Positions 5,657 through 63,949 of a DNA stretch of 64,000 bases are shown one piece after another. The position numbers and the translations under genes were made by a program. Source of the DNA: Macrostomum lignano (lineage: Eukaryota); NCBI GenBank assembly GCA_002269645.1, contig NIVC01004009.1, positions 836 through 64,835 of the forward strand, read 5' to 3'. The notes beneath the pieces were generated by a model. That model saw only the letters and a program-made list of their open reading frames with translations, made no database searches and was not told where the DNA came from. Position 1 is the stretch's first letter, and every line of letters begins with the position of its first letter.

Positions 5657-8600
5657 ATGCAAGCTTCATCGTCCGCCACCAGCGTGCCCACCAGTGACTC
5701 CAGCAGTAACAGTCGCATGTCCAGCACCCGAATCTTCATCCGGGGCTTGTCTCCCGGCACAACCGATCTGAAAATTCGGCAGCTCATTGCGCACGAAGCC
5801 GGAGTTCCTGATCACTCCATAGTGTTTGCTCAAACCATCTTGGATTCGCAATCTGGCCAGTGTAAAGGTGCGATTTCAATTTCTTATGTAGTCTGTTTTA
5901 TCATGCAAAGTATGCCAAGTGCATTAGTTTGCGATTGTAATAATATATATATAATTTAATACGCAACCGGCAAACCCGACACCCTCAATTACCCCAGGTA
6001 ATGCTGACACCCATTTTACAGCTGGGTGAACTGAATCAATGCAGAGTTTTAAGTGTCTTGCTCAAGGACACAAATTGTTCCGAATGAGTCGAGAATCGAA
6101 CCCCGACCTTTCAGTCGTGAGTCCGACGCGCTGACCACTGGGCTGCAACCCCTGAATTAGTGATGAAAATTTAAAATATTTAATTGTGAGTACCTACGTA
6201 ATTACTATAATAGATCATGATAAATGATACTCGTACGATAGTGAACTACTAGTACTCAATTTCAAACCAAAAAAATAAGGCTTCAAAACAAAGAAACTGT
6301 GGTCGAAGAGCAAGAAAAGTGAACAAGAACTTTCACTCACATTTAGGGACCGGCTTCGCTGAATTTCGAAACGCAGAGCGGGCGAAGATGGCAGTAAGAA
6401 ATATTCAGCAGCTGCAAGCCACGAAACATGCCAGCCAGGGACAATTGAAGGTCGAATTCGCTCGGGTGAGTCTTCGATATTTTTTATTAGACATCAAACT
6501 TTCTGATAGCGCAGCATTTCAAATGCAATGCCGAGCACCCACCGTGTACAAAATACAGGAGGCAGAAAAGGACGGCAAAGAGATGTTCGTATGGAATTTG
6601 CCTGTCAACTGCACGATGGAGGGGATTAGACAGTTTCTACTATACGAATGCAATTGTCGCGAGGATGCGATCTTGTCATTCAGGACTTTTCGTGCTAACC
6701 CATATTATTCAACAGGCCTTGTGAAATTTAAAACGGAGTTCACGGCTTCACGTGTTATCCAACTCATCAATCACAATGGGCTAAGGCTCTCCCACAAATA
6801 TGGATGCTCTGGGCGACTTGCTGCTAAATTTTCTGAAAAAAAGACCCGTGATGTCGGTGGTCGACCAGTCTGCCTTGAAGATATTGTGAAGCCGAGCGCG
6901 CATCTTCTTGTAAGTTTCCTCATGGCTGTACTACCCAATTGTAATCAAGGTTGGAGGTGGGTAGCTGCCTAAGTAAAGCGAGTCTAAAAGGACACCGTTT
7001 AGCCTTTTGATTGCATCAAACCTATTCTGCAGGCTAAGTCAAGCAAGCCTCGGTTTTACCCTACACCAGACTAGTGATATGCTCTAGATGGCTCGTATTA
7101 AGATATAAATGCTCTAATATCGCCTCATACTAATAGTACGAACTGACCAAGCTTACAAAATACGAGTACATGTAAATGCAACTTGCAGCTGCTGTCAGCT
7201 GAGATGCTCCTGTGGTTCTTTGAATCCTTATCGCTTATCTCATTCGATACTTGCAAAGTCTGGAGGTTAATACAGTAGGAGAATGATGCAGAGTGGCACT
7301 GAGGGGAATAATGCTGAGTAGTACCTCGTTAATGCATTGATATGACAATTGAGAAGACTATAGCATATTACTATTGCTATGCATATTGTTAAAGTCACGC
7401 TAAAATGGCCGGAGCGATTCGTCTTTCTCCTACTATTAGACAGCATACTCTACTTAAAGAGAATTTTTAAAAAGGATAATTAATCAAAACCTTAACTGAC
7501 TGTCCAATAATTGACTCGGATCATTCATTCTGAAATTCATTTCAGGAAATCACAAAGGAACCACTCGAACTGAAAGACGCCGAAAACCCATTCAAATGGT
7601 GCGCATACGATGGCTCCGACAAAAATATAGAGGATGTGATCGACACAATTTCGGACCGACTGAAACTTGAGCCAATGCTCTCATCGGCTTATCATGGCCT
7701 CCTGGCTGCTTATCACGGAACCAGATTCAATCGGCGTAAGCATATCGACTTCACAAAGTCAAGGGACTCCTTGAAGAGCGCAATAGACTATTGCAAAGAC
7801 ACAGATGAAGGTCATGTCAGATGCGAATTCGTCTTGCAAGCCATTGAGTTAAACCTGGATGCTAAGCAGAGACGGAACCAGCTCAACTTCATTAAACGCT
7901 TCGAGGCCCTCAACAAGATTTGGAACACTCAAGATGAGGCCAAGCGCATCGAGATCAGAGCCAACGTTTTTCACGTTAAAGCTCTGGACTTTTTTCACCA
8001 AGGCATAAAAAAGTACGATGAAGCAGAGGAAGCTGTGAAAGCAAGTCTGAGCTTGCGACCGGATAACTTCATGTGCATCTACCTGCTGGCGTATATTCGT
8101 GCGCGGGTGCGTCGCCATCACAACAACAGGACGCCTGCTGATGCGGAGGAGTTGTTCCTGTGGAATCGTGCATATGATCTGGCAAATGAACACCGGTGGC
8201 AGGATAAGAATGAAGGAACAAAAATGTACTTCTATCAGTTTTTAATAAACTATGCGGAGGCTATTTTGAACAACCGGAGCTTAGAAGACAAGTGCCTGGA
8301 ACTCGCGAATGCCACGTACCAAGCATTGAAAAACATAAGTACTCAGGTATTGGATGAACATTACCGAATTGTCTTCAGGTGTGAAAAAATCTTTCGGATT
8401 CGCAAGCATCCAGAAACGCAGGAACTCCAGGAAATATTGCAACGCCTAGAGAAGGATACTAGAAATTCTGATCTGCTTTTCAGATTAGCGATGTTGGCTG
8501 AAGAGAAAAAAGATGATGAAAGGTGCGAAGAGCTGCTGATAAGGGCCCAAGAGTTGTCCTATGAGCCTGGACACATTTGGGTTGATATTTATTATCAAAA

Positions 8601-10059
8601 CTTCAAGGAAGCTAGACCCGAAAAATTTTCGAAGAATACTATTTTGAATACGTATGACACTCTCGCTAAAAGATATAAACGTTATGGTTATCCCAGGTAC
8701 GAAGCCGTTTGTCTGTACTCGAAGGGAGCCTTTATGATGACATTTTCTGAAACAGAGAGCGTTGCTGATGGTTTTGAAGAAATGGTCAAAGCGGTGCAGG
8801 TCTATCCTGAGGTTCGAGTTCATATCCATAAATCGAAAAAAGATGAGACGCTAAAAAATCTGAGCCAGAAGACTGACAGATGCGAATTCGAGGCTTGGTT
8901 TCAGCAGCATATGCTGGACCTTGACTTGCAGTCAGATGAACCACAGAGAATTGTTCAGCTCTATACCGAAGCATTGAATAGTGAAAACTCGGATCACCAG
9001 CTGGTGTACGAGCATCTTGGTCTGTTATACTTTCGCCTTCGAGACTTTCAAGCTGCAGAAGAAAATTTCCGAAAACTTCAGTCTGAAAATCCTCGCAGAA
9101 ACTCTCTGCTGTCGTCCGCTTTGCTCAAAAGAGCCGAATCGAGAGATGAAGCTGAAAAGAGAGACTTGATTGTCGAGGCTCTCCGACTTGGAAACCCGGA
9201 GGCGTGCCAGCCCGCTCGACTCTTGCTGGACAACCGACTGGATCATCAGCGGCGGTTCCCTCTAGAAGCCATCAAGCAGAAGTACTGTCCTGAGGACACT
9301 GACAGACCAGTGCAGATCGTGCCGTGGCTGTTCAGCAAGGACTCGTACGAGCTGCTCGCTCTGATCAGCATCGCGTCACAGGAGGACAATGAAAACTACA
9401 CAGAAACGTCGCCTCTGGTCCAGACGGATCTGCAGAAATCGAGACTGGCTCTGGAGCGAGTAGAGCAGCTCGGGAAACAGACTGAGAACGATTATTATAA
9501 TGCCATCATGGAAACCCTGAAACTCGCAAAAAGTGCAATGGATGGATTAACTGCAAAACTGGATGGCAACGAAATGGAAAAGAGGCTTGATTACTTCCCA
9601 TACGGTTTCAGGTATATGACTGTAAAAAAGGATGAGACAAAAAAGTTGATTTGCGGATTACAGAAACAAAGCCACGAAAATCGAAGAACGGAGATTAACA
9701 AGAAACTTTCAAATTTGCTCAAGCTGAAGGCATCCGCAAATGATGAAGCGAATCAGAGAGTAAATGCGCTCGTTGATTTGCTGAGCGCTCGAGAATCAAA
9801 AGCGTTTCAGTTCCAGCAGCCATTTGCTTGGCTTGTGATCTGGCAGGAGTTGAGAAATAAAGCGGAGCACTCGAGCGGACAGAAGCCCATGAAGACTTTG
9901 ATTCCCGAGTTATTGGAGGCCTGGAACTGCGACCCAGATTGTGCTGGAAGCGTCGCGCACATGGCTGCGGAGTTCGTTGAGGAGACCCGGCTGATATTCG
10001 AGGCCGAGACTGAGGAGCTTCAAAAAGCAATTACTAAAGGAGGCCAAAGCACCAATTGA
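5657..10059 (+). CDS. Copy A: RRM-RRM / IFIT-like TPR / HEPN-like protein, ~1064 aa; exons 5657-5867, 6347-6465, 6559-6909, 7546-10059
   Basis: All four exons join in frame through GT-AG introns (phases 1, 0, 0). Exon 1/2 splicing builds RNP2 IFIRGL and RNP1 KGTGFAEF. Exon 3 holds a second RRM (MFVWNLP...STGLVKF). Exon 4 is a long helical TPR-like ORF ending in a domain with WQELRNKAEH. Intron 2 is 93 nt and stop-free, so it could be retained; the start codon is uncertain. Confidence 0.8.
5955..6152 (-). mobile_element. tRNA-derived SINE with CORE-like central domain, in intron 1 of copy A
   Basis: Minus strand: CAGTGGTCAGCGCG (A box), GGTTCGATTCTC (B box), GTGTCCTTGAGCAAGACACTT...CACCCAGCTGTAAAATGGG (CORE/MIR-like), followed by a TA-rich tail. 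Confidence 0.8.
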
Positions 10060-10345: not shown

Positions 10346-10842
10346 TAATCATGAGTGCAGGAATAGAATGGATTGCTAATCTAGCCTATCATGGGTGCAG
10401 AAATAGAATGGATTGCTAATCTAGCCTATCATGGGTGCAGGAATAGAATGGATTGCTAATCTACCCTATCATGGGTGCAGGAATAGAATGGATTGCTAAT
10501 CTACCCTATCATGGGTGCAGGAATAGAATGGATTGCTAATCTAGCCTATCATGGGTGCAGGAATAGAATGGATTGCTAATCTAGCCTATCATGGGTGCAG
10601 AAATAGAATGGATTGCTAATCTAGCCTATCATGGGTGCAGGAATAGAATGGATTGCTAATCTAGCCTATCATGGATGCAGGAATAGAATGGATTGCTAAT
10701 CTACCCTATCATGGGTGCAGGAATAGAATGGATTGCTAATCTAGCCTATCATGGGTGCAGAAATAGAATGGATTGCTAATCTACCCTATCATGGGTGCAG
10801 GAATAGAATGGATTGCTAATCTAGCCTATCATGGGTGCAGGA
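10346..10842. repeat. 40-bp tandem repeat, ~12 copies
   Basis: Unit ATCATGGGTGCAGGAATAGAATGGATTGCTAATCTAGCCT. Confidence 0.95.
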
Positions 10843-24030: not shown

Positions 24031-25239
24031 TGCTGCCGCTTCTCTTGCTGCTGCTGCAGCTCTGCCTGTCTATGGCTTTAAGCAGCCAGGCTGCTGCTCA
24101 AGCGGTTGAGCAAATTCTCTGAGTCTGAGTTTTTTGTTTATTCATACTGAATTGTTGCATTTGCTCTGACTCTGAGTATTTACTCAGCCTCGAGAAAATG
24201 CTCCAGCTCAGAGTGCGAGCATTTGCTGATTTTATTCATACGGCCTATTGTACGCACCTGTGCATTTTTTGCACACTGTGGCACAAGCGCTCACGCCCCG
24301 ACCGGCGGAAGCGCGCAGCGAATAATAGCAAGAGGAACCACCGACAGCAGCCAGAGTAAAGCACTGCTCATCGTCAAAACTAGTCGATTTTATATCTATT
24401 AAACGACTAAACAATAATTAAATAAAGTTCCGAAGCTAAAAGCATGACAAAAACGAATCAAAGGTAAAAGCTAATATATAACATGTGTAAGTGTGGGAAA
24501 TGACATTCACCCAGAAACTGTTTTTGGAGTGGAAGCCTCAACATGTTGCGGAGTTGTCACGCGCGCTCGTAATTCGGCCATTATTCAACGGCTAGCTAAA
24601 GCTCAGGCCGAAATGAGGCTACGCCATGCGGGTGGCCGGAAAACTTTTTTTACCTTGAGGGACAGATAAATATTCTAGCTTTTGGCTGCCGGCCAGGTGT
24701 GAAAGGAAAGGAGGGAAATAGAGTAGAGATTAGATGAGAAGATACGTGTGACAAGAGGAGATGAGAGATAGAGGGACAGTTGAGATGAAATGAGATATGA
24801 GATGAGAGAATTATAGAGAGGTGATGTAACCACGCTCTGGTCGCGGGATAGGGCATGGGAACTTTTTCGAAGGTGCCTCCTATCCCGCGTACCCCCCTGC
24901 ACAGAGCTGTCGAGACTCGGCCAGGTCTCTGACCAGGCCTGGAGACTCCCGCTCTGCTGCACCCCCCTGCTGCCTTGGTTCCGTCTCCCCTGCCGCCACG
25001 CCTGCCTTTCCGGAGCTCCCTGTCCCTCTCTGTACCCTCCCCTCTACCTTATCTCCCCTGCGCCCCACCCTATTCTTCTTGCACTCTCCCTATTCCCCCC
25101 TCTTTTTGTCTCTCTCTGCACTATTTTCCTGCGCTGCCCCCTCTTTCTCTGCGTCTACTTACAGTATTTTGTGTGCTCACCGATCTCCCATCCCTTCCCA
25201 AACTCCCAAACGGTGACGCAAGTCGTGTGACCCCTTCTT

Positions 25240-28051: not shown

Positions 28052-28550
28052 GGCTGTAGCCTACCTGAGTGTAGCCTACCTGAGTGTAGCCTACCTGAGT
28101 GTAGCCTACCTGAGTGTAGCCTACCTGAGTGTAGCCTACTTGAGTGTAGCCTACCTGAGTGTAGCCTACCTGAGTGTAGCCTACCTGAGTGTAGCCTACC
28201 TGAGTGTAGCCTACCTGAGTGTAGCCTACCTGAGTGTAGCCTACCTGAGTGTAGCCTACTTGAGTGTAGCCTACCTGAGTGTAGCCTACCTGAGTGTAGC
28301 CTACCTGAGTGTAGCCTACCTGAGTGTAGCCTACCTGAGTGTAGCCTACTTGAGTGTAGCCTACCTGAGTGTAGCCTACCTGAGTGTAGCCTACCTGAGT
28401 GTAGCCTACCTGAGTGTAGCCTACCTGAGTGTAGCCTACTTGAGTGTAGCCTACCTGAGTGTAGCCTACCTGAGTGTAGCCTACCTGAGTGTAGCCTACT
28501 TGAGTGTAGCCTACCTGAGTGTAGCCTACCTGAGTGTAGCCTACCTGAGT
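28052..28550. repeat. 15-bp tandem repeat, ~33 copies
   Basis: Unit GTAGCCTACCTGAGT with an occasional C>T variant. Confidence 0.97.
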
Positions 28551-30888: not shown

Positions 30889-31810
<922 letters not shown>

Positions 31811-32545
31811 AGAGGAACGCACATCCAATCCCAGGCGCTGACACGGTGAAAGGACTGATAAAAGTCAATTTACTTCGAAATAGTTAATGTTACCGATATT
31901 TCGAGTAAGGTTACTCTTCGTCAGGGCAGTACTCATATTCGAGTATAGTTTATTTGCGCGAATTGCTGTCAAAATATTTAAAGGCGATAACGTTGGGGAG
32001 GAAAATCGATAAAGAGAGAGGTAGAGAGAGAGAGAGAAGAGAGGTCACGGCGTGTTTACAAAATAATTAATTTAGTATGGGCTAACGGTTTCGAGCCTTT
32101 GGGCTCTTCGTCAGGCCAAAAATCAGTGTTTCATGCAGTGCAAGTTGGTCTTTTAAGTATTAGTTTTCTCAGTCTAATAAAATCGCTGAGCTGCTGTACA
32201 TATGAGGGGTGTACATTTAAACTGGGTTCATTCTAGCTCTAACTTGTCCCAGAGGCTTTCAACCGGTCAGTTTAAGCGACGGTATATTTAGTATATTAAA
32301 AAATTGTTTTTTCGAAGTTACGATTAAATAAAATGCGGTATTGAGGGTGGGAGCATAAAAATCGACATTTGTGCGTACAGTCAAGCAGTTTGAATAAAAT
32401 ACACGACAAAGTGAATAAATATTGTAGTTCTATAGGTAAAAAGAGCGCATTGGTTAAAACGATTCAATGGTTTCCTGGCTGGACGCTGGACGATCCGTTG
32501 GAAATAGACCCAGATCTCAACCTTCTTCCATTTCCGATTGAAAAC

Positions 32546-33652
32546 ATGGCGCGAAGGAATCCTGCCGTCCATCGAGACATTAAAGAGACAGTTGGGTCTT
32601 ACACTATGGACAAAGATTTTGCGACCTTCATTGACCACTTTGATTTGGTATCAAGAGAATATGGATTACAAAATCCAGAAAAGGCGCTACTCCTCCCTCC
32701 ATTGCTACAAGGCACAGCCCGAGAAATTTATGGAAAATTAGATGCAGCTACACAACGAGATTACCATGCCATGATCACCCAACTTCGAACACAGTTCGCA
32801 CGATGCGGAACCAATCGATCGGTGTTGTTACATAAATTACATAACCGGAAAATGACACCCACGGAATCATTCCTCACCTTTGTCGATGATATTCGACAAA
32901 TCATCAAAGCCTTGCATCAACAGCAACCGCAACCAGCAGCAGCAGCTCAACCCCTTGGACCAGCAGAAGTGGCTGCTAGAGAAAGACAACGGCTTGCAGA
33001 TCAAAAGCAAAGTCTAATTCTTAATGTCATTAACAATGCTCAACCTGCCTTGCGAGATAGACTCCTGCGAGAAACAATTGAGACAGAAGAACAGTTACTC
33101 CGCTGTGGAATGCAGTGGGAGGCAAGCGCACCTCTTCTGGCTAACCGCACTAGTGACACCGCACAATTAGCAGAACAATTAAGCAAGCTTATGCAACAAC
33201 ACCAAGCCGCAGCAATTGCAATGCGCCCGCCACAAAGCAACCCTCGAAACGTTACTTGTCACAATTGTGGAAGAGTAGGTCATTACTACAGAGATTGCCG
33301 CCAAAACTTGCGTCAGAATCAACCACGAAATTATTCCGGTGGAAACAGACGAGACAACTGGTCCCGCTATCCAAACCAACAATATCCATCAAACAGAAAT
33401 CGGATGAATAATCGACCACCACCATGGCGGGATAACTTACAACCTTACAACTCACGCCGACCCGCTCCACCAAGGCAGCCAACGCAGGTGCATAGACAGT
33501 ACACACAGGCCATTGAACCACAGGCCAGTGAACAACAGGCTATCGAACCAAAATTTTCGGTAGAAGAATTAACACCAGATTTCAGTATCAACGTACGTGA
33601 TACTCTCTTTGAAGATACCGACTACATGTTACCATCTCCAACGGTGCAATAA
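32546..33652 (+). CDS. gag: Ty3/Gypsy Gag
   Basis: Retrotrans_gag-like F..FIDHF...KALLLP.LLQGTAREIY...ESFLTFVDDI and CCHC knuckle CHNCGRVGHYYRDC. Confidence 0.9.
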   Translation: MARRNPAVHRDIKETVGSYTMDKDFATFIDHFDLVSREYGLQNPEKALLLPPLLQGTAREIYGKLDAATQRDYHAMITQLRTQFARCGTNRSVLLHKLHNRKMTPTESFLTFVDDIRQIIKALHQQQPQPAAAAQPLGPAEVAARERQRLADQKQSLILNVINNAQPALRDRLLRETIETEEQLLRCGMQWEASAPLLANRTSDTAQLAEQLSKLMQQHQAAAIAMRPPQSNPRNVTCHNCGRVGHYYRDCRQNLRQNQPRNYSGGNRRDNWSRYPNQQYPSNRNRMNNRPPPWRDNLQPYNSRRPAPPRQPTQVHRQYTQAIEPQASEQQAIEPKFSVEELTPDFSINVRDTLFEDTDYMLPSPTVQ

Positions 33653-35640
33653 TCCGAACCGGAATACGAGAATCTTGCTACAATTCTTAATGCTGAAAAA
33701 CGGAAACGGACAAACAAAGGTGTGAACACTCAACCGTTCCACTTCTCACGTAACCGATTCACTCAAACAGAAGATAACACCTACGTTACGATGAATGTCG
33801 GAGAACTGCATCAACAGACTTCTTCTACGCCGACTCGACCAGAATTCATGGGTACCTTTCGAAGACACCCTACAGCGTGTCACCCACCAGCGTATCAGGA
33901 ACCTTTAACACCTGTACCCCACTCAAGAAAATGGTTCTTCCGTCCACAAGACATCACTCCATCTGAAGAACCAGAAAACGACTACGAGGAACTGGACGAA
34001 ACCACGATCACAAGTCACTCCAACAAGAAAGGAGAACAAGAAGAAAGTATGCCGATGCCGAAGAAGAGCAAGAAGAGACACCCTCTAATGAAATGGCTAT
34101 TTGCGATGATCCTTTTCGTCCTGCTACCACTGGTAACTTCAACTTCAGTACCAATGATTTGTCCTACAGACGCTACCATCCAGCCGGTCATCTACAAAAT
34201 TCCTACGGAAATCAAATGCAGTTATTTTAAGACGAATCAAACAAAGCCGCTACCGCTTACAATCGACATCTACAAAGCGAATACAAAGAAGCATCGACAG
34301 ATGGGAATTGTGTGCTTTAGAGACAAAGACGAACTCGAAAAGATTTGGTTGGTACAATGGAACCGAATCAGATATTGGCAAACATCGATGAAGGTATCAC
34401 ATGAAGAATGCCTCCAGTGGAACCAAACCCTGTTTTCCAAAGACGGTGAATTGAAGCTCCACGACACGTCAGCAAACGGAGCGCAACTATTCCGCACCAA
34501 CAACGTAGCCGAAGGAAGATATGTGCACTACCACGCAGCACGATGGCCTCTGTATACTGTCTACAACAGCTATCTGATTCGAAACGTCTTGTTCTACCAC
34601 AATCCTTTCGAAAACATGGAATCCTTGCAACTACCGCTTGACCAATGCCACTACAGCTCAGGATATTGTGCTACTCCTAACTACAACAAAGAGAAAGCTC
34701 AAAACTTACCGCTAGCTCCGAATTATTTCCATGACTATCGATACCAAATCGAGTACAGATCGGATTCTCGATACAAGGAACCGAGTCGAACTCGCAAATA
34801 TTTCATCGCATGGGAAGTCAAACTGAAATTGACTGCAAACTACAGAAATACCATACTGTTCAGGGAAAACTGCTATCTAACATCTTCCTTGCCGATTCTG
34901 GAGATCTAGCTCTTACCTTTCCAAAGCAACCAAGCTATACACAACTGAAATGCAAGGAAAACAATGAACAACTAATTCTATCTGACCAAGAAATACCAAT
35001 TGCACTGAAGGACATGGACAAGAATGTATTTTTGAAGGTGATAAATGGTACCTATCCAAGAGAAGAAACCTTGGAAAGACAAAAGCGAAACTTGCCCAAA
35101 CCTTCGTTAGTATCAGCACGACTTCTGGCAGCAAAACTAGCCGCCATGGAACACACAAACTGCACAAGCAACTGAACTATCTGCATCGCTCCATGGTCAA
35201 ACTGACATGTCGAATGCACGAGACCAGTCTAAACTACGCGCGACAGAACTACTACGTCAACCCTACGACCACCTTCAGGAAAATCACAGGAATTGAAGAT
35301 GTCCTCGCCGTTCCGGTTTATGGATACTTGCTAATCTACAAGTGTACTCCGATCCATCACTTTAACATCTTGTCATCAAACACGTCAACAACTTGCTACG
35401 ACAAACCGCGGATTGAAGCCTTCTACAATGGAAAGCGAATTCGAGGATTTTTGGATACGGTCCACAACATCATTGTCGGAACTGCCATCCCACGACCATG
35501 TACCAATTCGGCCAACTATTTCAACGTGAACGATCTACTACATCAAATTTCGCCAACAGGAGACATCAAGAACATCTCGAAATCACAAGCCATTGTTGAT
35601 GAAATTTACGAAATGTCGGATCTTCAACTGAAGTTTAATA
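33653..35640 (+). pseudogene. env: env-like glycoprotein between gag and pol, broken by two frameshifts (~34810 and ~35180) and lacking a TM anchor
   Basis: In frame with gag across one TAA. Internal signal-like stretch WLFAMILFVLLPLVTS (~34094) followed by MICPT...IKC, GIVC...VSHEEC; furin-like RQKR at 35077-35088; NPTTTFRKI...LLIYKC. This cysteine pattern recalls class III (chuvirus/rhabdovirus/gB-type) env ORFs of invertebrate LTR elements. Confidence 0.65.
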
Positions 35641-35644
35641 GAAC

Positions 35645-38600
35645 AACGAAATCCTCATCCCCACAGCACTGGTACTAATCAGCCGACAAAACGATTCCGG
35701 TACAAATCGTCAATCCTAACCAGCACCCAGTGAGAATCTACGCAGGAACCTGCATCGGACATCTCAGCACACAAGCGTCAGTGATGCTTATTCAATCAAC
35801 ATCGACAACATTGCCAAGGACACAATTCCTAGAACAAATCGATCTGTCACAAAGTCCAATCACCGAAAAACAAAAGAACCAAGTTAAAGATATTGTATGG
35901 AAGTACAACGATGTTTTCTGCCACCACGACTACGACATTGGACGAGCCAAAGACATCAAACAGAAGATCACACTGCTGCCGCACCAGGAACCGATTCAGT
36001 GCAAACCGTGTCCGATTGCAAAACATCTACAACAACACTTCGACGAGATCATCGAGAAAATGCTCAAAGCCGGTATCATCAAGAAGACAGTTTCAGCCTA
36101 TTCCTCTCCATGCTTGCTTGTCGAGAAGAAGGACACAAACGAGAGAAGACTTGTCTGCGATTTTCGAGTCCTAAACAAGTATATCCCGACAGATCAACAA
36201 AGCCCACCCAAGATTTCGGAACTAATGGCGAGACTCAACACAGCGACACTCTTCACAGTCTTTGATCTACGACATGGATTTTGGCAAATCGAACTAGAAG
36301 AAGAGTCTAAGCAATACACAGCCTTTAAGACGTACAATGGAGAAGTCTTCGCTTACCAAAGAAGTCCTATGGGAATTTCAAACTCACCTGCTACAATGAG
36401 CTGACTAACAGCCTACATGCTTGCTGGATGTACCAATCTACTCCACTATGTAGACGATATTCTTGCCTTCGGAGAAGACTTCGAACAACTACTCCAAACG
36501 ATGGAACTCGCGTTATTCCTTCTCAGGCGACAAGGTCTCAAACTACAACCCACCAAGTGCAAGTTTTGCCGAAGCTCGGTACGATACTTGGGACACCACG
36601 TATCCGCAAAAGGAATCTCACCAGATCCAAGTAATGTGGAGAAAGTAAAGAAATTACCACGAACAACCTCTATAACAAAATTGCAGTCCTTTCTTGGACT
36701 AGCACAGTATTTCCGAAAGTTTCTGCCAAACTTTGCCAAAACTGCCAAACCGCTATACGAACTGCTCAAACAACCAAAGTGGAAGGAAGAAAACTGGAAG
36801 GACGAACAACAAGAAAGCTTCGAAAAGATCAAACAGCAACTGACGACCGACGCCTTACTGCAACATCCAAACTTCCAAAAACCCTTCATCATTGAAACCG
36901 ACGCCTCAGGAAGTGGACTAGGCGCAGTTCTACTGCAAGAAACGGAAAGAAAAGTCGAAAAGCCCATCGCCTACATCAGTCGAGCTCTACGACCAAACGA
37001 AACCAAATGGTCCGCCACAGAAAGAAAATTACTTGGAGTTCTGTTCGCACTACGACAGTTTCACTACTACATCTACGGTTCTCCATTACCGACAATTTTC
37101 AGAACCGACCATGCACCGCTGACGCACGTTGTCCAGACGAAAGGACAGACTAACAACCGCCTCATCCGAATGACACTCAAAATTCAGGATTACAACTTCC
37201 AACTAGCCTACAAACCGGGACCACTCAACAAAGCAGCAGACGCACTCTCCAGAGCTTACGAAGTCAACGCTATCCATCCGATTCCGAAAATGCAAGAACT
37301 GATTACAGCACAGCAAGACGACAACTTCTACAAAGCCGCACAAAACACCGACGACACCACGCAAGCCAAATTAACAGAACAAGAAAGAAAATTCCTTAAA
37401 AAACAGCGCGACAACCTAATCTTCAAAGAATCAATCCTTTATTGGATCTGTGACAATATTCCGCGAATCTATCTGCCATATTTGTTTCGACCCGCTATCT
37501 TGCAAGAATTGCACGACATGCCATTAGCCGGACACCTTTCCGCTAAGAAGACAATCGAACGAGTGACAAAATTCTACTTTTGGCCGACAATGGTTGGTTA
37601 TTCGTAAGTGAGACTTTAGGTCGGAATATCTTTATTATGAACAACTGCACTTTCAACTATTGCAATCTGTAATGGTCTTCGGCACTATGACAATTGCGCC
37701 ATATTGATACTGCACAATTAACTTTCCATAGCGCTAATCTTTTGTTGTTGGTGTTTGCTGTTTTGTTCTAAAAATAGGCGTCCATTATCCCGAGTTTGAA
37801 ATCATTATCCTGAAGTTTAAGTGAAAAAATAAATAAATGTGCTCATGGTTTAACCATAGACGATTGCATTATCCTAAAGGCTGATTTTAGACAATGACCA
37901 AAGACATCAGCAAATATTGCCACGAATGCCACTCATGCGCAGCCGCAAAAACGGGACGACGCCAAAAGCCACAACTACAAACAGTACCGAAAACAACGAC
38001 ATGGGACACAGTCTCCCTCGACATTTCGGGACCACTACCTGCCGCACGACAACACTCGATCAACTACACATACATCCTCACCGCTCTCGACGTCTTCTCG
38101 AAATTCGCTATAGCAATCCCACTGCCGAACATTACCGCCGAAACAGTAGCTATGGCGTTCTACAACGAGATTGTCTGCAAGTATGGAACGCCCAAGACTC
38201 TAACCACCGACAACGGAACGCAGTTCACCTCACAACTATTTCAACAGGCTGCAAAACTGCTTAACATACAACAAATATATACGTCTACCTACAACCCCAA
38301 AGCAAACTTAGTAGAAAGATTTCACCGCAATCTACACGAAATGCTGACCCACTATGTCTACAAGCAACCAGAAGATTGGATCATCTACTTGAAAGCGGTA
38401 ACAATGGCATACAACAGCGCGAGACATCGGTCAACGGATAACACGCCATTCTTCTTGATGTTTGCTCGAGATTTTCAACCGCCCAGCCTACTCGCAAAAC
38501 AATTACTACCATCTCAGTACGTGGAAACACCGCCGACACTCCAGACCTTTGCAACGCGACTACACCTGGCTTGGCAAATTGCCAAACACACTTTTGACAA

Positions 38601-38967
38601 CCAGACGGCAACATCGACAAAAACCAACAACGCATCTACGCTACAAGTCGGAGATATGGTCTATTTGCACTATCCAGCACAACAGACGCACAAACACGCA
38701 CAAAAGTACAAAGGACCATTTCGTGTATCAGCACTGACTTCGGCAACCACAGCCAAACTGGCCAATGTCCAAGATCCACATCAGCTGCAGTTCTACGTGC
38801 ACATTCATCGACTGAAACGCATCAACACAGACTCTACATTTCTGCCAAATTTAAACAATGAAAATCACACAAAAAGACCGTCTAAACACATTGCTACTTC
38901 TCACGCTGAAACACAAACTACGGACACTCCCATAACTAACCACCCCTATAGCCTTAGACCCCGCTAG
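35645..38967 (+). pseudogene. pol: Ty3/Gypsy pol (RT-RNaseH-integrase); protease absent, stop at 36402, insertion at 37593-37889
   Basis: YSSPCLLVEKK, RLVCDFRVLN, FDLRHGFWQI, YVDD, IETDAS..GLGAVL, HDMPLAGH...CHSC, LDISGP, DNGTQF, ERFH, KGPF. Confidence 0.95.
37593..37889. mobile_element. 297-bp AT-rich insertion in the integrase, with 7-bp TSD
   Basis: GACAATG at 37586-37592 and 37890-37896; removing the insert restores FWPTMTKDISKYC. Confidence 0.8.
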
Positions 38968-51323: not shown

Positions 51324-51562
51324 CTCTTCTCGTTCTCTCTGTCTTTCCCTGCCTCTCTCTAGTGTGCTAAAGCGAACTCCTTACTGCTCCATTCTGAAGC
51401 TGGGTTTGGAATCTGCAACATGAAATGCTGCTAAAGAGTTATGAGAAGCGGTCACTTTGATGTCAGGATGGAAAGCGTTTGAAGTCAGTAATGAAAGAAT
51501 ATTGACTAATTTCGAACTCTCTGTACCCCCACAGTACCTTGCCTTTCTGCTAAAAAAGTGTC

Positions 51563-52470
51563 ATTTCAGTTTTAGAATACATCTTAGTGTCAATTTCAGT
51601 TTTAGAATACATCTTAGTGTCAATTTCAGTTTTAGAATACATCTTAGTATCAATTTCAGTTTTAGAATACGTCTTAGTGTCAATTTCAGTTTTAGAATAC
51701 ATCTTAGTGTCAATTTCAGTTTTAGAATACATCTTAGTATCAATTTCAGTTTTAGAATACATCTTAGTATCAATTTCAGTTTTAGAATACGTCTTAGTGT
51801 CAATTTCAGTTTTAGAATACATCTTAGTGTCAATTTCAGTTTTAGAATACATCTTAGTATCAATTTCAGTTTTAGAATACGTCTTAGTGTCAATTTCAGT
51901 TTTAGAATACATCTTAGTGTCAATTTCAGTTTTAGAATACATCTTAGTATCAATTTCAGTTTTAGAATACATCTTAGTGTCAATTTCAGTTTTAGAATAC
52001 ATCCTGGTGTCAATTTCAGTTTTAGAATACATCTTAGTGTCAATTTCAGTTTTAGAATACATCTTAGTGTCAATTTCAGTTTTAGAATACATCTTAGTGT
52101 CAATTTCAGTTTTAGAATACATCCTGGTGTCAATTTCAGTTTTAGAATACATCTTAGTGTCAATTTCAGTTTTAGAATACATCTTAGTATCAATTTCAGT
52201 TTTAGAATACGTCTTAGTGTCAATTTCAGTTTTAGAATACATCTTAGTGGTCAATTTCAGTTTTAGAATACATCTTAGTGTCAATTTCAGTTTTAGAATA
52301 CATCTTGGTGTCAATTTCAGTTTTAGAATACATCTTAGTGTCAATTTCAGTTTTAGAATACATCTTGGTGTCAATTTCAGTTTTAGAATACATCTTAGTG
52401 TCAATTTCAGTTTTAGAATACATCTTAGTGTCAATTTCAGATTTAAAATACATCTTAGTGTCAATTTCAA
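51563..52470. repeat. 30-bp tandem repeat, ~30 copies
   Basis: Unit TTTCAGTTTTAGAATACATCTTAGTGTCAA with recurring variants and a 1-bp insertion near 52250. Confidence 0.97.
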
Positions 52471-53890
52471 TTTTTGTGTAGACATTGTTTACGTGCCCAT
52501 TAGCATCGTCAATTAATTGTAACGGCGATATTCATTGCGTCATTATCTTCCTTTGAATAAGAGTCTGAAACATTTCTATTAGCTAACAATAAATTATACA
52601 TTTCCTCTCAGTAGAATGCATGAGGCGGCTTTTGAGACAATTTTTTTATTGTCCTCCATAATCCTATTAAATCCATTCATATTATACCCGACAGAATCAG
52701 AAAAAAGGGGAGTCGCACTTGCTCCGAAAACTTCGAACATAATCCTCCTAAATCCATCCATATTATCCCTGACAGAATCAGAGCATAACAGGTGTCCTAC
52801 ATAATCCACTGACATCCACCCATAGCATCTTCGAAACAATCAGAAAATAATCTGTATTCTTCTCCCCACATTCATTTCGCAACGCTAAACCAGATCCTCA
52901 GCGCAGGGTGCTCATCCCCTGAAAAAAATTAAATTCTTAATAAAAATGCTTCCAATCGTCTCTCCAGGTTCTTATTACAAAGCGCACGAGTCTAATTACA
53001 AGAGTAAGTACCGATGCAAACTAGAATGCAGTGATTACATGAGAAAATATTGGCCCGGCGTTGATATCAATGTCCCTAATATTAATCTAGCTCTCCAAAG
53101 CCACTGGTTTCTTAAGTATGGAGTAACCTACGTTTAAGATTACGACAGCTACTATAACTTTTCAGAAATCATTAAGCAATTGTAGTTTTTTTTCGACAAA
53201 CGATTGATTCTCTGCGGAGTACTCACAACTCCTAATTTTTGTTTTGGTTGGTGCTCTCGGGAAAGGAGTTTAGAGTGAACGAGACACGTTTCTCTCCTCT
53301 CCTTTCTCGACCCAAGGAAAAAAGAAGTTCCTTGTGGGAATTTTAAGGTCAGCCTTATAGAAGGAGCATGTTATGTGATTCACGCGCCAGTTAACCTTTA
53401 CAGAGCATGCAGCAATTTCTTATTTTTGACTTGCTTAATCTTTGCATCTTGCCATGGATGTTGAAATGCGAGCAGGCGACAACGTTTACATCGAAAATCT
53501 GGAGAACTTCATTAAGGCAGTATTTTCTAGTAAAGATCTTGGCAATTGGAATGTTTGGGCCGATAAATATAATGCAATTGCTCGGACACCCATCGAGAAG
53601 CCAACTATCATCGGTCGAATAGCAAAAACTGCCGACAAGCAATCGCAAATCAACAAGACTCTGGACGAGCTGCGCAGGCCTACAAGGCCAACGGCGAGCA
53701 TGTGCCTGAGAATTCTCTAGAAGAATTTGAGCAGGGAGCATTCACGATCGACGCGGTGCTTGTACAGATTGCCAACCTTAATAAACTAGTTGAACGGCGC
53801 GGTCAGCAAGGCTTTGCAAACGGCCTACAGCTCGGCAGGATCTTTCGTTTTACAAACGAAGGCTATTACAAACTTATCATAGATATTTAA

Positions 53891-59976: not shown

Positions 59977-62900
59977 TTAATCATCAAGACGCCAGTGACC
60001 AAAAGGTAGTGAGACCAAATCACTGGTCCAGGCTCGCTTTGTGTCGAAGTAGCCTAGTGCCTGCTTGTACTGACTCATCGAAAACACAAGCTGCTTGCGC
60101 GACGTAATTGTTTGCATGGTTACGTAGTGCAAACGCCGCTCGATTAGTACATGCAAAAAAACATTATGCTTCAGACTACGACCAACACTTCTGCACACTC
60201 CCTTAGATCGAGACAGCTGCCGAACTGCTCCCTCGTCATTGCAATGCAAAAAAGAGTAGTTCTTTGGACGGAGAAAAACAAATTCTAACGCCAGTCGACC
60301 ACCGAACTCGTCTTTCCAGGCCAGCAATCTTCCCTTGTGAGCAAGAGAATAGAGCTCGTGGGTTGGTGGGTAGTTACTAGTATCCAAGAGCCCCTGTGCG
60401 GCCAAGTCCTTGAATAGCGTCTCGTATGGCGTCTCAAAAGCGTTTCGCATTACCAACGCCATCATTAGAGAGTCTGTATCACCTCCGAGTACGCGAGCAC
60501 GTGCAAGCGATCGATGCACCTGGAATATAGATTCAACGAGAAAACGGTGAATATTTAAGGTCATCATTTGCTCTCCAACACGAACAGCTGCGGTTTACTC
60601 AACTGCACGTGTTGATAATAAAATTCGTACACAATCGTTTTAGCAATATCCAAAATCGTTGCACCAATAATGATTGCTTTGTTAAGCACTACTCGTTGAG
60701 GAGACAGGCTGACACCAGCCAAACTCTCGGTGTATATTGTCACGCCCAAAAATTCTTCTCGGCCTATGTAGGCCTCCAACTTTTCCGCTGAAGAACACAT
60801 TCGATACGACACCCGATCTCGAACGCGTTAAAGGAACTTTCCAAAAAGTGCATTGTTTAAAAGTTTGAAAAAGTCTTTTTCAAACTCTGTCTTCGCAGCC
60901 ACCCGGCGCGCAATATTGTGATTAATGTATTGACGCAGAATGGGTTTCTCATCGAAAGCAATGACTCGATGTACGCGGGTGACTCGCAACCCCAACTCTA
61001 AGTAGAGACGCAAAGCACGATGATGAACCACGTAGTTGCGCTTGTGGTCCACCGAACCGACAAGCTTTTTTGTCGAGCTCTTGAAAGGTTTAACATCTTC
61101 GTAGCTTGTAGCATTGGCATAGCGTTCCGGATTCAGTTGGCGTTGCAGGTAAACCCAATCGTCTTTCATCTGTTGGGTAAGCTGAGAGCCCGTTAACGTC
61201 TCGTGCCCGACAGCTAGTGGAAGATCGGCGGTCGAGTCATGCAAAAATCGTGGATAGTAAAGGTCTACATTGAACAGAGCTCCACGCTCATTGCAGCAAA
61301 AACTAGTCAGCCAGTCAAGCATGCAACTTTTAACATGCAGAGTCTCAAGAAGATCGCTGTCACATGGGATTTGAGCAATCTCTTGCCTAGTAAGCCAGCG
61401 AAAGTCGCTACACGGCATCGGTTCAATCATGCAAGAAGCATACAGAGAATTAGCGTCCAAATAAACCAAATAAGTTTCATCGGGTGCATTGTCCCGCAGC
61501 GTGGAATATTGAGGCTCCTCCTGATTCAACTGGTTGCGATACTTTCTTACAAGTTTATTGTTGGCGGTCGTAATATGTAGGGTTCCAAAACTAAATCCTC
61601 CACGAATTGAGGATTCTACTTCTGAATACATTTTAGAATCTGTAAACAAATGAATCGGTGACTCCAAACGAAGCAAGCAAGCCGCCATACTGTACATGGG
61701 CGAGCCAAGAAAATTCGCCGGGTCAATTCCATACTCTTGCATTGCTGTCTTTCGAAAGGTCTCAAACACATCACACAAAAGCAACACATCCAACAGCAAA
61801 TAGGCGGTGGTGTAGTCGCGCAAACTCTTGCAACTGAATTCTAACCAGGCTCGTTGAGCTCGAGCGTAGTTTTCATCGGAACAGTGCTGCATAGTGACGC
61901 TATCGTAGAAAGCCTCTTTTGGTGGGAGCTGCTTAAAAGAATCGAGTAACTCTTCATCGGATAAGAATTGATATGGATAGACGGCTTTTTGTTGGAGCGT
62001 AGCCGGCTGCAGTTGTGGATACACCTCGAGCAACTCGCGCGTGTGAACCAGCTGCTCTGGCAAGAGACGTTGAGCCAATACCGCCAGACTGGTAGACAGA
62101 TAGGCAAAAGTGTCCTTGAAGCATACTTCAAACCATACATAATCTCGCTTCTGCTGGCGCCAAGAAGCACGCAGTGGTATCTTAAACTTTACTGAAAAAG
62201 TTTTAAATTTCTCTCTGGTTTCGGGAAGCACGTGAAGCTGTACATCGTTTCCAGAAAAATATTCGTACAATTCTATAACGAAAAATTTGCCGTCATAGTT
62301 GCTCAGGCAGTGCGTATAGACAAGAAGCCGGTATCGTTTCAGAGAAAGTTTCCGATTACACGAAAAAAATACAATACCTCTAGGTATCCCACTTAAATGG
62401 CAATGATCCAAAACCTGGCGCTCATCAGGAGCAAATGCCCGATGACACAACTGACAATATTCTAATCTCGTTCGGTTATTTGGTGGTAGAGGTGAGTACT
62501 TGCGCAACAAAGGAGTAAACGTGGCTCCAGAAGTTTCGGTCTCGCAACAAATATCCGTAGCCAACTGGCGAAGAGCCAACAAAAACTGGCGGATGCAATT
62601 AGGACCGCCGTCTGGATTATTGTAGAACACATTGCATGGTCGCTGTTGACCAACTTTGGCTTGCAATCGCGCAGCCGAAATTTTGTCAAGTTCTGGGCAA
62701 ACTACCAATCGATAGGCTACACATAAAGGAACGTGAATATCTCGAATCCGCATATTCGAACTTGCAACTCGCGGCTTGTTGACTTCAGCAACGGTCTCGG
62801 GCGGCGCCAGAACGCTCTCGATATCAGCATAAATGATATACAACGGAGGCAATCGAGCCTCGTGTGCAGTAAACTCAAGAATTGCATCAGAGGGTTTTGG

Positions 62901-63949
62901 TAGCGATTCTACTGGCGCGCATCGGCTCACACGAAATTGTTTTTGGTCTGACGAGGCCCACTGGACTGTCGGTTGGTCCATAGTTCCTCCCTGACAATTG
63001 TGCTGCTTCAAAATGTAGTCCCACGGAACGGTGTGGGAAAACCCGACCAAGCAGTCGGGGCAGTAGCGCCTCCGTTTATTTCTCGTGCTCAGCAGCGAAT
63101 TCACATTTCGGACGGGTATGTAGTGCCCCAAATTGTGCTCACCGTACGGAGGAATGAACAAACAATTGGCTAAATGCTTCTCCTCCCTGTTACGCAATGA
63201 AAAGTAGAGAACACCAGTCTTGCTTTCGTGATCCCAGACAAATATGCGCAAGCTGATATGCGGGTTTCGACGACAGAACTTCCTGTACGAACCAGCTGTA
63301 TGTCGAGCCGGACCAACCCTACTACCGAACAACACCATCATCAGCCATGGGGCGTAGCTTTTTTTGAGGTAGGTTTGGCAACCTTTTCATAAAAGATGCT
63401 TGCCAATATTGAATACCGAAAACAGTCGGTTTGGTTAGCGTTGTGTGGCTTAGAGTAGATTACTGCATCTCGTTTGCGCCGAAGCGAAATCGGCACTTTG
63501 AATGGACCGCCACCGCCACCGCCGCCGCCGCCGCTGCCACGTAGGGTGGTTGTACGACGCCTGTGACCAGACGGCGCCGTCTGGTCGCTGGTGTTGTTCT
63601 GAGCAGTGCTAGCACTACTACTCGCTCTCGTCGGTCGAACACTCCCTTTACGATAGATGCACAGCATCAAGTCCAGTTGTTCGATTCCACCATACTGCCA
63701 ATTTGAACCTCGGGCAGTAAAATTTTCCAATTTGCTCACCAATTCTGTGACAACCGATTCGAACCATTCGTTGAAGGCATCGCGCGAGAGCAGCAACCCA
63801 CCACTGTCGCTTTCGTCAGACCGGATCGTTGCAACGTTAGTGTTGAAATAAACAGAGATATTCTCCAGCATTTCATTGTTGTCATCGTCATCGTTGTTAG
63901 TTGTTCTTGATCGAAACATTTTCACTCTCAAATGTATGCATGTTCGCAT
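59977..63949 (-). pseudogene. Protein-primed family B DNA polymerase of a Maverick/Polinton, split into four frames
   Basis: N-terminal RGSNW; YADIES (ExoI), DHCHLSG, H.LSNYD (ExoII), YLLLDV (ExoIII), YLDANSLY, KLLNNALFGK, DTDS. Frame breaks near 63341, 60820 and 60565. Confidence 0.95.

Follow-up and report, generated by a model that had tools for sequence, protein, structure and literature searches.

A species-restricted RRM-TPR gene pair of Macrostomum lignano with an orphan, predicted all-helical tail that carries an R-N-x3-H motif

Two convergent genes and their homeologous locus

Two convergent paralogous genes, here called A and B, lie 10 kb apart in the window, by which we mean the whole 64-kb stretch of Macrostomum lignano DNA that was analyzed. 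Gene A has three exons, all of them intact in the window; together they encode RRMs in tandem that resemble those of RBMS, followed by a TPR region and a C-terminal tail of ~250 amino acids. Using tblastn with the M. lignano database protein P0001, we placed exon 1, with the start of RRM1, at approximately 5657–5869 on the forward strand (aa 1–71 of P0001, 98.6% identity), and the remainder of the tandem RRM, in exon(s) 2, at approximately 6346–6966 (+; aa 71–247 of P0001). The last exon (7546–10059, +; tblastn) holds the TPR region and the tail up to the stop codon; the open reading frame within it, ORF A (7636–10059, +; 807 aa), ends with the tail. Two TPR profiles of Pfam exceeded their gathering scores on ORF A (TPR_8, 34.5 bits against 25.7; TPR_2, 27.3 bits against 27), with matches at residues 457–487; the top-scoring repeat spans residues 458–486 (9007–9093, +). 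With a profile built from the family, both N-terminal RRMs matched the RBMS1/MSSP tandem RRM (6m75) at E=8e-14, and Pfam RRM_1 (PF00076) was detected in the paralogue P0002 (E=6e-9). RBMS proteins, however, have neither a TPR region nor a tail of this kind. When ORF A was searched against 5.8 billion protein clusters, five proteins were recovered, all of them M. lignano entries named "RRM domain-containing protein." Among the proteins searched, the family is restricted to Macrostomum lignano, and it is of flatworm origin.

Gene B is read from the reverse strand. Its last exon (20225–22831, −; located by ORF, tblastn, and codon comparison, with an ORF at 20225–22813) encodes the paralogous TPR region and a nearly identical tail, and another exon (23157–23537, −; tblastn) encodes aa 112–238, a part of RRM2. 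The exons for aa 1–111 (RRM1) are missing from the window, as seen both by tblastn and by comparison with L001 (NIVC01004067.1). Reached through protein P0004, L001 carries the same two-gene locus as a homeologue or allele, ~96% identical; we denote its genes A' and B'. At 23541–24243 (−) of the window, ~660 bp of unrelated DNA replaces ~1.2 kb that is present in L001 (9314–10532). Between genes A and B lies a BEL/Pao LTR retrotransposon (Peptidase_A17, RT, integrase, and DUF5641; 13996–18311, −), which is absent from L001, so that its insertion is either polymorphic or haplotype-specific. Among the database models of the family, P0001 shifts to the +1 frame beyond an A-run in GACAAAAAAGTTG and terminates in that frame.

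The two copies differ greatly in their similarity along the protein. Compared codon by codon, A and B share ~50% protein and ~58% DNA identity over the N-terminal 450 residues, whereas between ORF A residues 509 and ~790 their DNA is 97%–100% identical, and 99%–100% from residue 559, a stretch that covers the tail. In the window this gene-conversion tract appears as an inverted repeat of 1087 nt with 96% complementary arms (arm 1, 8942–10028; arm 2, 20316–21402). Near-identity of the tail DNA, set against the ~50% identity of the N-terminal protein, shows recent gene conversion with a sharp tract. Because the tails have been homogenized in this way, the tail of copy B lends no independent support to any motif found in that of copy A.

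The tail: motif, selection, and predicted structure

The tail comprises 252 aa to the stop codon (9301–10059, +). An original prediction, made from the DNA letters alone, had quoted 238 of these residues as a C-terminal domain with an intact HEPN-type motif; they are the exact translation of 9301–10014 (+), including YYNAIMETLKLAKSAMDGL, YFPY, QPFAWL, and WLVIWQELRNKAEH. We describe the tail as an orphan domain, predicted to be all-alpha: AlphaFold models of it contain helices only, and its relatives were found within M. lignano alone. The hexapeptide RNKAEH, to which that prediction pointed, is encoded where it had been reported, at 9853–9870 (+; R740, N741, and H745 of ORF A) and at 20474–20491 (−) in copy B. 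Each of the four genomic tail copies has it unaltered, as do the proteins P0002 and P0003, all from one species; since the four genomic copies have been homogenized by gene conversion, their agreement on RNKAEH is not independent.

With an asparagine after the arginine, RNKAEH conforms to the HEPN pattern Rx4-6H with a polar residue (N, D, or H) following R, a form of motif, RN...H, that also occurs in 8% of shuffled sequences. More precisely, RN...H arose in 8.2% of ORF A shuffles and, when the 252-aa tail alone was shuffled, in 0.8%, and the looser R.{4,6}H was found in 99% of ORF A shuffles; the six-frame translation of the 64-kb window contains 13 instances of RN...H. The frequency of the motif is therefore compatible with chance, and on its own it is weak evidence for HEPN. 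A second HEPN feature, an acidic residue of helix 2, typically in the form Ex3[KR], has a possible counterpart in E-A-N-Q-R (9745–9759, +), read from the sequence in the helix that precedes the one with the motif, although the pattern is common in a helix rich in Lys, Arg, and Glu.

We observed a marked difference in selection between the two parts of the tail. A core of 103 codons, LSNLLKLK...IFEAETE (9706–10014, +), holds the motif and has pN/pS values of 0.04–0.27 across the four copies, whereas the 97 codons preceding it have values of 0.7–1.8. Comparing gene A of the window with A' of L001, the last 103 codons differ by 10 synonymous and three nonsynonymous substitutions, and the preceding 97 codons by four synonymous and 15 nonsynonymous substitutions (Fisher p=0.003 for the contrast). 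The low pN/pS of the core indicates that the segment bearing the motif is a real, constrained protein segment. Such constraint would fit a catalytic domain, and would fit any other functional module equally well. Between the two parts of the tail, a stretch of 35 aa (window 9614–9720) is wholly different and unrelated in A' of L001, and P0003 skips 36 aa in the same place, where the frame change of P0001 also falls. Unlike the constrained core downstream, this middle stretch is either variable or prone to error.

Structure prediction gave models of low confidence. AlphaFold2 returned a mean pLDDT of 40 for the 252-aa tail with a five-sequence alignment, and a pLDDT of 52 with a pTM of 0.44 for the last 157 aa as a single sequence. 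Both low-confidence models are all-helical and have the same local layout, with RNKAEH at the end of the amphipathic predicted helix PFAWLVIWQELRNKAEH, the Gly/Pro-containing loop SSGQKP of 6–7 residues after it, at least two helices before it, and two more helices following the loop. In the 157-aa model (pLDDT 52), E-ANQ-R falls in the helix of residues 53–68. A HEPN domain is a four-helix up-down bundle. In HEPN domains, Rx4-6H is located where helix 3 ends and its loop to helix 4 begins (PMC3710099). The predicted secondary-structure layout is thus compatible with HEPN, and the models do not establish a tertiary fold. Foldseek searches of the PDB with the 157-aa model gave a best E of 0.77 and no recognized HEPN RNase among the 50 matches listed; given the low confidence of the query model, this outcome says nothing either way.

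Searches for relatives of the tail

Profile searches of the segment against the HEPN clan and bacterial proteins, which the original prediction had proposed as its test, gave no significant match. No HEPN-clan family was found in Pfam at E≤1 or at E≤10, also when three different sub-segments were used as queries; the PADLOC profiles gave no HEPN match to the tail; and no HEPN protein was found among PDB sequences with the tail, its last 125 aa, or the family profile. The R-N-x3-H motif stands as described; the HEPN identity attached to it is unproven, and we regard it as unlikely. The sole NCBIfam match was to Csm6 (TIGR02672), with tail residues 14–191 aligned to profile positions 195–379, its helical and HEPN region, and the alignment ending on RNKAEH. 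The match has an E of 0.39, and its 9.7 bits compare with a cut-off of 150; the M. lignano protein is eukaryotic and has no CARF domain. A score of about this size would be reached by the motif on its own, and hence the match does not constitute independent evidence.

An exhaustive phmmer search of 1.84 billion representative proteins produced no true relative of the tail beyond the M. lignano cluster. The only match outside Macrostomum, P0006, is an acidic repeat protein of 3865 aa with 18 matched stretches, which we discarded as a compositional artifact. No relatives of the tail were found in 185,579 bacterial and archaeal genomes (GTDB) or in metagenomes, and no orthologues outside M. lignano in the protein collections searched. 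A word-indexed search with the 252-aa tail missed even P0002 and P0003, whose tails are 90%–94% identical; having missed known paralogues, it is uninformative, and short queries can give false negatives there. The layout of the tail had also raised the idea of a horizontal origin from bacteria. No bacterial relative was recovered among the representative proteins, the GTDB genomes, the metagenomes, NCBIfam, or PADLOC, and the tail shares its exon with the eukaryotic TPR region, downstream from RRM exons that are separated by introns. Transfer of the tail from bacteria is unsupported.

Some weak similarities were also followed. Pfam HPF1 (histone PARylation factor 1; PF10228) matched the tail with E=0.03–0.05 and 14 bits, below the cut-off of 27, and Nematostella HPF1 (6tvh) aligned without gaps over 60 aa with E=0.71. 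These local alignments cover LDYFPYGFRYM...ASANDEAN and pair GFR with GYR and ANDE with ANDE, which would suggest that the C-terminal domain of HPF1 is a relative of the tail and that the protein is a PARP-associated factor. We built an HMM from collected HPF1 proteins, with the human sequence verified against the PDB; a word-indexed search with human HPF1 had only tetrapods in its listed top 120, so this profile is shallow. The vertebrate HMM scored 2.2 bits on the tail, a value that 36 global and 62 block shuffles reached out of 2000 of each kind (p about 0.02–0.03), and hhalign assigned the pair a probability of 0.16%; neither comparison is significant. At the place of the conserved Tyr-Arg element of HPF1 (Y238/R239 in human), three copies of the tail have GFRY but A' of L001 has GFSF, and the Foldseek TM for HPF1 was 0.23 with the model of pLDDT 52. 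With the shuffle scores, the hhalign result, and the loss of the GFR element in A', we dropped HPF1 homology.

Two further Pfam matches, ARPP-2 (E=0.015) and CDC37_N (E=0.02), are weak and mutually exclusive, and both were rejected; the one ARPP in the literature searched is a beta-sheet domain (PMC9503650), to which we equate Pfam ARPP-2 by name only, whereas the tail is predicted to be all-helical. Ten shuffled or reversed control sequences yielded 0.4 matches per sequence at E<1, with a best E of 0.054. That a helical, charged tail attracts mutually exclusive weak matches shows that Pfam E-values of about 0.02 are unreliable for it.

Adaptor module or ribonuclease

The solid result is a pair of RRM-TPR genes restricted to one species, whose helical tail is an orphan under selective constraint. 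On the most likely reading, to which we give a probability of roughly one half, the protein is an RRM-TPR adaptor and the tail its constrained helical module without catalytic activity. The protein would bind RNA or single-stranded nucleic acid by its RRMs and bring in partners through its TPRs, and the conserved helical tail would serve as a putative interaction or oligomerization module. RNKAEH would then be a surface motif at the end of a helix, and its likeness to HEPN most probably coincidental. The RRM and TPR matches, the absence of any HEPN family match, the chance-level frequency of the motif, the all-helical models, and the constrained core all support the adaptor reading. Against it, the full canonical arrangement of R, polar N, three residues, and H is found at a HEPN-like helix end, where the tail is most constrained, with a possible Ex3R in the helix before it, and the protein combines RNA-binding domains with TPRs, which recur as fusion partners of animal HEPN domains.

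The main rival is that the tail, or its last 110–130 residues, is a new and highly divergent metazoan HEPN RNase. HEPN RNases are characterized by dimerization-dependent, metal-independent activity. If the tail belonged to them, the RRMs and TPRs would select an RNA, two tails would dimerize to form a composite Rx4H site, and cleavage would leave 2',3'-cyclic phosphate ends; such a protein would resemble the lineage-specific metazoan HEPN proteins proposed for immunity or RNA surveillance. This is suggested by the motif itself, with its polar residue after R; by its place where a predicted helix ends, with a loop and two helices after it, as described for HEPN domains (PMC3710099); with low weight, by E-x3-R in the preceding helix; by the low pN/pS of the segment and the intactness of RNKAEH in four copies; and by the Csm6 alignment over a helical and HEPN region. 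Against it, chance alone would put such a motif into 8% of proteins of this kind, the four copies were homogenized by gene conversion and have no orthologues that we could find, the Csm6 score is about the worth of the motif, and neither Pfam, PADLOC, PDB sequences, nor Foldseek with its poor models returned a HEPN family or protein. HEPN families are notoriously divergent, and negative HMM searches are therefore weak evidence. Weighing the chance rate of RN...H, the negative profile searches, the helix layout, and the RNA-binding context, we judge a HEPN RNase improbable.

There are precedents for such a fusion. TPRs are a recurrent partner of animal HEPN domains, as in DZIP3/hRUL138-like proteins (Anantharaman et al. 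2013, PMC3710099) and C6orf70, and an RNA-binding domain is fused to HEPN in CXorf38-dsRBD. The M. lignano protein resembles the DZIP3/hRUL138-like proteins in being an animal TPR protein with a predicted all-alpha domain, R-N-x3-H at a helix end, and a family confined to one lineage. It differs from them in that the tail matches neither HEPN_DZIP3 nor any other HEPN profile, its fold is only predicted, and RRMs stand in place of RING, NACHT, or Death domains. In KEN domains, the corresponding motif strings are RNKKHH in IRE1 and RNLGEH in RNase L. The string RNKAEH is alike, and a Pro-containing loop follows it in each case, but there is no similarity beyond the motif (Pfam and PDB sequences), and the M. 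lignano protein has no kinase or pseudokinase partner.

Were the tail a true HEPN RNase, a lineage-specific RRM-TPR-HEPN effector would be added to the few animal HEPN nucleases known, and Macrostomum, a model for regeneration and germline, would gain a candidate RNA-cleaving surveillance factor. It is doubtful that the locus represents a new tandem RRM-TPR-HEPN architecture confined to Macrostomum, with an RNA-guided-by-protein endonuclease acting in surveillance or in defense against viruses or transposons. Equally doubtful is the corresponding picture of two convergent genes in which gene conversion maintains identical nuclease ends, with null alleles in the homeologous locus. For both the HEPN label and the idea of horizontal transfer, a six-residue motif is insufficient ground for annotation.

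Slightly less probable still is a reading in which the genome is polyploid, the genes are duplicates in decay, and the tail has no current function. In L001, each gene has an in-frame nonsense codon, A' through CAA>TAA (codon 351 of window A) and B' through TCG>TAG (L001 13138–13140, just upstream of the tail); these codons may be null alleles, pseudogenization in one subgenome, or assembly errors. Gene B of the window lacks the exons for aa 1–111, and the frame change at the end of P0001 points in the same direction. However, gene A is intact and the core of its tail is under purifying selection; moreover, A and A' differ by no frameshift across 2.5 kb, every indel being a multiple of 3, and some of the defects may be errors of the assembly. 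A relationship to HPF1, for which the Pfam and 6tvh alignments with their GFR/GYR and ANDE/ANDE pairs had spoken, is close to refuted by the shuffles, hhalign, the Foldseek TM, the GFSF of the homeologous copy, and the equally good Pfam matches to unrelated families. The remaining probability is spread over other possibilities.

Beyond the two genes, the window is ordinary repeat-rich eukaryotic DNA, in which Rfam and tRNA scans of the 64 kb gave no match. It contains a Ty3/gypsy-type retroelement (zf-CCHC gag, RT, RNase H, and integrase; 32369–38967, +) and a Polinton/Maverick-like ORF (DNA_pol_B_2 and Endonuclease_7; 60828–63341, −). Two minisatellites lie directly 3' of gene A, one with a 40-bp unit repeated 12 times (10348–10842) and one with a 23-bp unit repeated 89 times (11211–13252). 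Three more are found farther along, with a 15-bp unit repeated 33 times (28055–28550), (CAGA)n repeated 231 times (30890–31811), and a 30-bp unit repeated 31 times (51557–52474). The 40-bp, 23-bp, and 15-bp arrays have counterparts in L001.
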